Sequence record: OQ411014.1
DNA length: 64,000 nucleotides
Reading direction: 5' to 3' (one strand)
In this document: positions 45,032 to 45,903 of the stretch, piece by piece
Position numbering within the stretch: the first letter of the stretch is position 1
Layout of the letters: every line of letters begins with the position of its first letter
The notes under the pieces: generated by a model
The model's database searches: none
Told to the model about the DNA's origin: nothing
The model's input: the letters and a program-made list of their open reading frames with translations, nothing else
Translations under genes and position numbers: made by a program

Positions 45032-45074
45032 AATGCTCACTTCGGTGAGCATTTTTTTTATTTTGTGATATAAT
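45032..45074 (+). promoter_or_regulatory. UUCG terminator whose 3' arm supplies the -35 of a class II promoter (GTGAGC-18-TATAAT)
   Basis: aatgctcac-ttcg-gtgagcatt, T-tract, tgtga-tataat. Confidence 0.8.
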
Positions 45075-45084
45075 TAAGCTATAA

Positions 45085-45640
45085 TCTCGATTAACCATTA
45101 TGGTATAAAGAAACCTAATCCACTCGAAAATGTAGAGGGTAGATGAGTTGAGTAATCGCAACGAAGTGCAAATGAAACCCGTTAGGTGAAGGCATAGTTA
45201 GTACCTCCCACGGCGACGCGGCACTATAAATGAGCATGGTAAGATGATATTGCTCACTCGATAGACGTATAGGATGAACACCTACCAAATATCTAAGGGA
45301 GTTCATCAAAAAGGCTGGCTATAGATCCGTCCAGAATTTGATGAACACAGTACTGAATTGACTGTATAGTTCAGTACTGAAGTGTAGTAAGACTACGACC
45401 GTTGCAGAACAGAGATAGGGAGAAACAGGGCAACCCGCTTCCGTATCGTAAGATAATTCTCTATACAGTACTCCGATGCTATCAGCGTCAGATTGTCGTC
45501 CCTCCCTTGTGGGGGGATGAAATTTCCTCAACAAATCTCGTCAGGATTGATTCAGTACTATTGATATTAAATGAATATTCAGTTATGATACGAAGTATCT
45601 AACGAATACCAGACTTCTCATAAGAGAAGGATGTGATGAC
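45085..45640 (+). ncRNA. large structured ncRNA, copy 2
   Basis: No credible ORF; own promoter; colinear conserved blocks and covarying stems relative to 2396-2905. Confidence 0.8.
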
Positions 45641-45654
45641 CCAAAGGAGATATA

Positions 45655-45903
45655 ATGAAGATTTTCAAATTTATTGCTGCTTCAGTACTAGCACTTTCCC
45701 TAAGTGCGTGTGATCGCGTAACAGAAGAACGTTCGCATGAGTTCGCACTTCCTTCTGAGTTAGTTCAAGCAGGATGTAAGATTTATCGTATGCGAGCTGA
45801 AAGTGGTGTAACTCTATATGCTTTGTATTGTCCTAATTCCACAACCACAACAAGCTACACCAGTGGTAAACAAACTCATCATGTCACTACGTACAGTAAC
45901 TAA
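45655..45903 (+). CDS. small lipoprotein
   Basis: Lipobox LSAC; AGGAG RBS. Confidence 0.8.
   Translation: MKIFKFIAASVLALSLSACDRVTEERSHEFALPSELVQAGCKIYRMRAESGVTLYALYCPNSTTTTSYTSGKQTHHVTTYSN

Follow-up and report, generated by a model that had tools for sequence, protein, structure and literature searches.

A putative family of large, multi-pseudoknotted non-coding RNAs in Rak2-like jumbo phages

The stretch analyzed here is a window of 64,000 nucleotides (nt) that matches Escherichia phage EJP2 (OQ411014.1; Asteriusvirus; 349,185 bp) at 100%, with position x of the window corresponding to position x+248,000 of the record. An earlier note, made from the sequence of the window alone, had flagged the segment from 45085 to 45640 as the second copy of a large non-coding RNA; in the EJP2 record, this segment appears as a 630-bp unannotated gap with a hypothetical gene on each side. 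By every test that we ran, the element is a member of a previously undescribed RNA family of Rak2-like jumbo phages, whose large (~420-650 nt) non-coding RNAs contain multiple pseudoknots. The window hosts two diverged paralogues of this family, copy 2 (~45081-45640) and copy 1 (~2396-2925), which lie on the + strand, as do all features of the two copies described below, and can be aligned from end to end as long identical blocks with differing stretches between them. Indeed, an nhmmer search of the window with a family profile returned exactly two matches, at 45077-45491 (E=8e-98) and 2424-2776 (E=1e-67), both on the + strand, and the similarity of the two copies is far above chance. As for what such an RNA does, we postulate, with about even confidence, that it is a compact folded molecule that works in trans together with a partner, either a protein or a nucleic acid.

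The pattern of substitutions demonstrates that the selected product is the RNA itself, read from the + strand. RNAalifold, applied to 34 non-identical homologues, predicted 56 base pairs, 37 of which carry compensatory changes. We curated a model of 13 helices on the same alignment and added two pseudoknots, one formed by the loop of helix H8 (PK1) and the other by the crossing of H10 and H12. In this model, 97.2% of 2,214 cells are standard pairs, compared with 37-42% after sliding the 3' partners by 1-3 columns, and 47 of the 66 modelled pairs have changed on both sides. The covariation score reaches 0.521, against 0.05-0.09 for the slid versions, and none of 500 shuffles scored as high. Since the MAFFT alignment was poor at H7, the outer part of H8, and H9, 28 representatives were folded one by one, and all three hairpins formed in each of the 28 with unrelated stem sequences. 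These data bear out the proposal of the earlier note that selection acts on RNA structure; homologues devoid of compensatory changes had been named there as the finding that would speak against it, and the helices covary across the 34 homologues.

Four stems that had been described as altered between the copies were read correctly from the sequence. More specifically, ggagc/gctcc (2511-15/2530-34) of copy 1 becomes tgagca/tgctca (45231-36/45251-56) in copy 2; catgtac/gtacatg (2595-2601/2619-25) becomes cagtactgaa/ttcagtactg (45348-57/45370-79), with aagtg after each; ggctc/gagcc becomes gttcatcaaa/tttgatgaac (45301-10/45337-46), downstream of ctaaggga; and tgaag/cttca becomes tagg/ccta (45270-73/45281-84). 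Because these stems (H5, H8, H7, and H6, respectively) covary or fold across the homologues, we regard them as genuine and family-wide. The elements said to be common to both copies are likewise present, namely gttgc/gcaac (45401-05/45430-34), gatgc/gcgtc (45475-79/45485-89), and a C-run/G-run hairpin (45500-16) ahead of ATGAAA.

The model contains more than 100 G.U cells that would be A.C on the opposite strand and, given also the orientation of the promoter and terminators, the + strand is the RNA strand. An alternative would dispense with an RNA altogether and treat the element as a dispersed DNA repeat or as small protein genes, as several GenBank records annotate it, some of them with 3-4 tiny "hypothetical protein" coding sequences over the homologues. 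These open reading frames (ORFs) are unconserved, however, and the compensatory changes, which involve G.U pairs, indicate a single-stranded molecule of + strand sense, so that we assign this alternative a vanishingly small probability. We also rejected one or more protein-coding genes as candidates because there are stops in all six frames (5-16 per frame), the variable alignment columns number 97/92/95 by codon position with no 3-base periodicity, and the indels between the copies break the frame (2 of 19 are multiples of three). A 15-17-codon ORF starting at a conserved AUG after the G-run was discarded as well, since it is out of frame between relatives owing to 1-nt indels within a conserved block, and the AAGGGAG motif, which resembles a Shine-Dalgarno sequence, is followed by a downstream AUG in few members only. 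In PQ464590, PP191103, MK773491, OR699181, and other records, the 3-4 tiny "hypothetical proteins" lie partly on the opposite strand. The small proteins annotated over these RNAs are very probably spurious, which is of practical concern given that many GenBank records carry them.

Comparison with known RNAs provided no relative. A search of the whole window against Rfam 15 (4227 models) at the gathering threshold retrieved 6 tRNAs only, a search of copy 2 at E<=10 gave only chance-level matches to unrelated small RNAs, and seven homologous loci searched at E<=5 had nothing over the element; the models covered GOLLD, ROOL, OLE, HEARO, raiA, group I/II introns, RNase P, tmRNA, 6S, pRNA, self-cleaving ribozymes, and riboswitches. 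The literature that we searched contains no description of this RNA, although papers beyond it may exist. Among individual candidates, a group I intron was rejected because the element is intergenic, has its own promoter and matches no Rfam model, and because its H10/H12 pseudoknot has no helices between the strands at the P4-P6 and P8 positions. By-hand comparison showed that the order of helices does not fit RNase P RNA or an HDV-like ribozyme.

Some known RNAs nevertheless share part of its character. GOLLD and ROOL are likewise several hundred nt long, stand-alone, and phage-borne, with many covarying helices and pseudoknots and a function that was unknown at discovery; in contrast to them, the present family matches no covariance model of theirs, resides in jumbo phages with Enterobacterales hosts, and has 3-5 diverged paralogues per genome rather than one. 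The phi29 pRNA is also a phage-encoded structured RNA with an early promoter and a covarying loop pairing essential to its function, but it is 174 nt long and single-copy and its loop pairing is intermolecular, whereas PK1 connects a hairpin loop with an adjacent strand within one fold, and the present family has no Rfam match. The nearest described objects are the putative long non-coding RNAs ncRNA001-004 of PA5oct, a jumbo phage of the wider Rak2/PA5oct group; they are ORF-free, 236-619 nt long, and defined by RNA sequencing, with two of them among the most abundant phage transcripts (PMC7318152), and neither structure nor covariation is reported for them. ncRNA002 and ncRNA004 showed no similarity to the family in nhmmer searches (--max, E<=100). 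The 3' end of ncRNA004 (L089 317-935) has a C-run/G-run hairpin followed by GGAAAUCUUCUCC, which loosely resembles the start of module B (see below) with no statistical similarity.

Copy 2 comprises domain A (~45081-45491), a fold of ~410 nt built from helices H1-H14 and two pseudoknots (nhmmer, RNAalifold, and pair counts), followed by a U-rich spacer and by module B of ~150 nt. Its flanks are as the earlier note had described them. On the 5' side, a terminator scan and the sequence place the intrinsic terminator of the upstream gene at 45032-45061 (a GCUCAC-UUCG-GUGAGC hairpin and a U-run), and an extended -10 promoter, TGTGATATAAT, follows at 45064-45074, where nearly all homologues have an aligned TGNTATAAT box; transcription would thus start at ~45081. 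On the 3' side, outside the RNA family, a Shine-Dalgarno sequence (AAAGGAG) and an 82-aa lipoprotein-like ORF (45655-45903) with a lipobox-like LSAC occupy 45643-45903. Copy 1 (2379-2925 with its promoter) is organized in the same way, with TGTGATATAAT at 2379-89, domain A at ~2396-2776, module B at ~2777-2925, and the next gene starting at 2932.

Domain A opens with hairpin H1 (45115-45142; strands 45115-25/45135-42), which displays a conserved loop, GAAAAUGUA (45126-34), and in which 6 of 8 pairs change on both sides. It is followed by a conserved junction resembling tandem G.A pairs (45141-45164), in which AGAUGA precedes hairpin H2 (45147-50/45159-62; supported by its pair counts) and GAA follows it; in a divergent clade introduced below, this motif takes the form CUGUAUGA-[hairpin]-GAA. 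Helix H3 (AGUGC/GCACU; 45165-45225) encloses H4 (CCGU, 45179-82; ACGG, 45210-13) and a variable insert, with pair counts supporting both helices, and H3 covaries from GUGC/GCAC to CAGC/GCUG and GAGC/GCUC. Next come H5 (45231-45256), all 6 pairs of which change on both sides, and H6 (45270-45284; pair counts), and then a conserved single-stranded segment, CUAAGGGAG (45293-45301), identified in the alignment. Its AAGGGAG is invariant in 13 sequences, and AAGGGA is present in 34 of 34 homologues as well as in the divergent clade. Hairpin H7 (45301-45346), which folds in every homologue, carries an insert, GGCUGGCUAUAGAUCCGUCCAGAAU, at 45313-37.

The rest of domain A contains both pseudoknots. H8 (45348-45379) is 99.6% paired, with 6 of 7 pairs changing on both sides, and its loop (ACUGUAU, 45361-67) pairs with AUACAGU (45463-69) ~100 nt downstream to form PK1, as indicated by the pair counts of this helix. 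After hairpin H9 (45383-45397; pair counts and single-sequence folds), a core double pseudoknot extends over 45401-45469, for which the pair counts of helices 10-13 and 8 provide the evidence. Within it, H10 (GUUGC/GCAAC, 45401-05/45430-34) crosses both H12 (GGGAG/CUUCC, 45418-22/45438-42) and H11 (AGAGA/UCUCU, 45411-15/45458-62), H13 is a hairpin with a GUAA loop (45445-54), and H10 appears in relatives as GUCAU/AUGAC, GUUGU/ACAAC, or GUUAC/GUAAC. The earlier note had interpreted the blocks shared by the two copies as cores for tertiary contacts or ligand binding; this needs amending to the extent that not all of them are unpaired, since gttgc/gcaac is itself a covarying helix, pseudoknotted with GGGAG/CUUCC. 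Domain A closes with hairpin H14 (GAUGC-UAUCA-GCGUC; 45475-45491).

The peripheral hairpins H7 and H13 are capped either by GNRA loops (GAAA, GUAA) or by a common insert module of ~25 nt, UACAAUAUAGAUCCGUCCAAAAUU. In copy 2 the module sits in H7 (45313-45337), and in other members it sits in H13 or in both; L037, L045, L046, and L090 have it in H13, where members without the module have GNRA loops. Large RNAs with a tertiary fold typically have such exchangeable elements at their periphery, and the alternation of the module with GNRA loops speaks for the compact fold that we propose.

Module B opens with the C-run/G-run hairpin (CCCUCCC UUGU GGGGGG, 45500-45516), which is conserved in all clades, and continues with a conserved block, AUGAAAUUUCCUCAACAAAUCU, and a repeat of the end of domain A (together 45517-45544). 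Its remainder (45545-45640) is the least conserved part of copy 2 and includes the hairpins GAUAC-GAA-GUAUC (45587-99) and CUUCUC-AUAA-GAGAAG (45614-29). In relatives, the module B hairpins keep their shape with changed sequences (CAAUC-GAA-GAUUG, CAUUC-GAA-GAAUG, CAUAC-GAA-GUAUG, and GGAACAUC...GAUGUUCC), which argues that module B is RNA too. A further hairpin predicted there by RNAalifold, GAUGA...UCGUC, was rejected, being nearly invariant and missing in the divergent clade.

The repeat links the two parts of the RNA. The last 7-10 nt of domain A, at the end of H14 (site 1, CAGCGUCAG, 45483-91), recur in module B as site 2 (CUCGUCAG, 45537-44), and among ~55 distinct units both sites always show the same variant, which is CGUCAG, CGUCAA, CGACAA, or CGAAG, with at least 3-4 independent switches of variant on a rough tree. 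The relation between the sites is one of identity covariation rather than complementarity, and since an A-type and a G-type unit (L036 and L025) occur in one genome, the coupling operates within the unit and not across a genome. Each site provides the 3' strand of a hairpin in the main clade, and the two hairpins look alike (GAUGN-loop-NCGUCAG), a rule that fails in the divergent clade. This behavior hints at a common reader of both sites; in the trans-acting mechanism that we favor, the same partner or the same strand would recognize them. Pairing of the invariant AGAUGAG with site 2 (CUCGUC) was rejected, since it is complementary in the main clade and uncompensated in L045, L012, and the divergent clade.

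The matched sites could also be the places where the RNA, as a self-processing ribozyme, cleaves itself or cleaves and rejoins, thereby freeing the segment of 50-140 nt in between. The strict agreement of the two variants through their independent changes would suit such a molecule, as would the double-pseudoknotted core and the presence in both clades of a hammerhead-like (C/U)AGAUGA-[hairpin]-GAA junction, which shares with the hammerhead core the NNGAUGA-[hairpin]-GAA motif and the potential tandem G.A pairs. However, no self-cleaving or splicing family of Rfam matches, and no covarying complementary guide strand is found apart from the 5' strand of H14, which is the best alternative partner of site 2 in about half of the units only. 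The hammerhead itself was rejected as a candidate: U4 is replaced (CAGAUGA) or displaced (CUGUAUGA), stems I and III are arranged otherwise, with H1 and H2 as consecutive hairpins and the partner of H3 ~60 nt downstream, and its model gives no match. We therefore consider self-processing decidedly improbable.

According to blastn, the element is present in 62-72 GenBank phages, all of which are ~350-kb Rak2-like jumbo phages (Asteriusvirus, Mimasvirus, Eneladusvirus, Munch/7t3, Kae01, and Hallingskeid) infecting Escherichia, Klebsiella, Salmonella, Erwinia, Yersinia, Serratia, Pectobacterium, Cronobacter, and Xanthomonas. A genome typically has 3-5 copies, most of which either lack annotation or coincide with tiny "hypothetical proteins" that are frequently placed on the wrong strand. 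Searches with the core pattern uncovered 30 stretches in IMG/VR, nearly all on ~350-kb contigs together with a few shorter fragments and with four dispersed copies of phage 121Q among them, and 40 stretches in metagenomes. The divergent clade is found in metagenome contigs of uncultivated phages with DHFR and MazG-like genes and a higher G+C content (L057, L060, L072, L073, L074, and L078); it keeps module B and the 3' half of domain A, whereas the 5' half is strongly changed, and no relative of this clade was found among 50,697 GenBank phages.

The dispersal of the copies along the genome, for example at ~91, 193, 248, and 327 kb in phage 121Q, raises the question of whether they are replication-origin transcripts, that is, R-loop primers made from an early promoter in the manner of ColE1 RNA II or T4 oriF/oriG. 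A 350-kb genome would then possess several origins at scattered sites, available for mobile islands to borrow. The ColE1 and T4 transcripts are similarly promoter-driven and several hundred nt long and act at the template DNA, and the T4 origins are dispersed, but the fold seen here is far more elaborate, and its density of covarying helices and pseudoknots exceeds what a primer is known to need. Each copy does have its own strong promoter and the G6 run is conserved, and units occur on integrative islands, in one case beside ParB/RepB-like genes. On the other hand, neither EJP2 copy is accompanied by a GC-skew signal (the skew is monotonic and hence uninformative), and no copy was found on 72,556 plasmids. 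An origin function is accordingly doubtful in our view, although somewhat less so than self-processing.

Full units with phage-type promoters are also present in three different bacterial chromosomal islands that have no other jumbo-phage genes (in Serratia, L046 3560-4160 on the - strand and L045 5280-6040 on the + strand; in E. coli LR-29-1, L090 11890-12640 on the + strand). The unit of Serratia fonticola GTA-SR07 adjoins a large serine recombinase and two ParB/RepB-like genes and lies beside duplicated rof and tilS, whereas that of Serratia sp. 2723 adjoins a different large serine recombinase; the two islands have only ~870 bp in common, at 93% identity. Extending the Serratia island to the left added 1.9 kb with no clear boundary. 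Among 5,426 complete E. coli genomes, 2 contain a unit (LR-29-1 and, by blastn, EEC_W5), and in LR-29-1 the surrounding island spans ~10 kb at ffs and also contains a tyrosine integrase that is disrupted, along with a candidate defence system, PDC-M45 (DuOB + DUF488). The islands may be satellites or defence islands. Their copies keep the core, differ in the peripheral inserts, and are followed by ORF-free DNA; from the kept core and the differing inserts, we argue that the RNA is functional in the islands and workable without the rest of the phage genome in cis.

Whether the RNA stands alone or leads into the next gene depends on the unit. Roughly half of the units, as read by eye, have an intrinsic terminator, T1, that follows domain A and precedes the C/G hairpin. 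This terminator behaves as a clean ~30-nt indel between close orthologues, such as copy 1 of Hallingskeid, which has it (L007 753-830), and copy 1 of EJP2, which does not (2779-2806), and it is missing from both copies in the window. The Munch group and L019, L022, and L024 have a bidirectional terminator after module B, and in the annotated record of Salmonella phage Munch the genes past the unit are convergent, on the opposite strand. Downstream genes differ from paralogue to paralogue. Collectively, the family behaves as a self-contained unit, with EJP2 copy 2 probably forming the 5' part of the lipoprotein-operon transcript in addition. The claim of the earlier note that the element is a stand-alone unit therefore holds for relatives with a terminator inside or after the unit and is not borne out for EJP2 copy 2.

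These features must be weighed against a cis-acting leader, be it a giant riboswitch, a protein-binding attenuator, or a processive-antitermination RNA, in which domain A would sense a signal or modify RNA polymerase and so set the read-through of T1 into module B and the genes beyond. The order of promoter, structured domain, H14, T1, and downstream genes in roughly half of the units is that of a leader, the EJP2 copies run directly into genes, module B is structured, which implies that T1 must be read through at least sometimes, and look-alike sites 1 and 2 are what alternative-pairing switches produce. Yet the genes downstream vary by paralogue, and in Munch they are convergent behind the second terminator; site 2 lies downstream of T1 and so cannot decide it; T1 comes and goes as an indel between close orthologues; the island copies are followed by ORF-free DNA; and ~410 nt with two pseudoknots far exceeds known aptamers. 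We rate a leader function as unlikely, although it is to be taken more seriously than an origin transcript.

The autonomy of the island copies, the differing downstream genes, and the convergent genes in Munch lend support instead to a compact RNA that acts in trans. Its partner may be a protein, of either phage or host origin, or a second nucleic acid, for which it could serve as the scaffold of a ribonucleoprotein (RNP), as a decoy, or as a catalyst, and it would not be a gene-specific riboswitch. Both EJP2 copies would then have lost an internal terminator and, unless processed, would also form the 5' part of the downstream mRNA. Several points weigh against such a role. We infer action in trans from context, and no explanation of the matched-site rule fits all clades. 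In addition, the terminator scan found no terminator-like site before the next gene for either EJP2 copy. Given that none lies between copy 2 and the lipoprotein gene, copy 2 is probably co-transcribed with the lipoprotein operon as a leader of ~570 nt, and judged from sequence the terminator-less EJP2 copies would fit a leader equally well. Moreover, minimum-free-energy z-scores are modest and no better for the + strand (-2.3, compared with -3.4 for the - strand), which makes them useless for strand choice.

A bolder version of the trans-acting proposal would see here a new class of large functional RNA, a ribozyme or a self-assembling or RNP particle, which jumbo phages of Enterobacterales would maintain as several specialized paralogues. 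Mobile or defence islands in the chromosomes of Serratia and E. coli would have captured it together with its phage-type promoter to exploit or jam the phage. We hold this to be speculative and about as unlikely as a leader; if true, both sides of a conflict between phage and host, or between phage and satellite, would be using one RNA fold as a weapon. All tests run indicate that the family is new, and whether it also represents a new kind of system depends on its function. It is rare for a new family of large (>400 nt), densely covarying RNAs to emerge from bacteria or phages, and earlier examples such as RNase P, group I/II introns, GOLLD, ROOL, and OLE proved to be catalytic or to have unexpected architectures. 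The combination found here of a large, doubly pseudoknotted RNA with several old paralogues per genome in phages of at least 9 host genera is unusual, and so is its presence in integrase-bearing chromosomal islands, one of them with a candidate defence system. The family is also experimentally tractable, since some of the phages grow on E. coli K-12, such as Sharanji (host K12 MG1655).

Further features were noted around the RNA. The + strand of the window has 17 TGNTATAAT boxes and the - strand a single one. A paralogue at ~30 kb in Mimasvirus and Eneladusvirus (L004 326-370; L014, L016, L023, and L026) has a terminator-like GC-rich hairpin with U6 only 5-35 nt 3' of the TGNTATAAT box, between the presumed promoter and the RNA. 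Finally, six tRNA genes lie on the + strand of the window between 8682 and 20769, three of which are 87 nt long and have a long extra arm.

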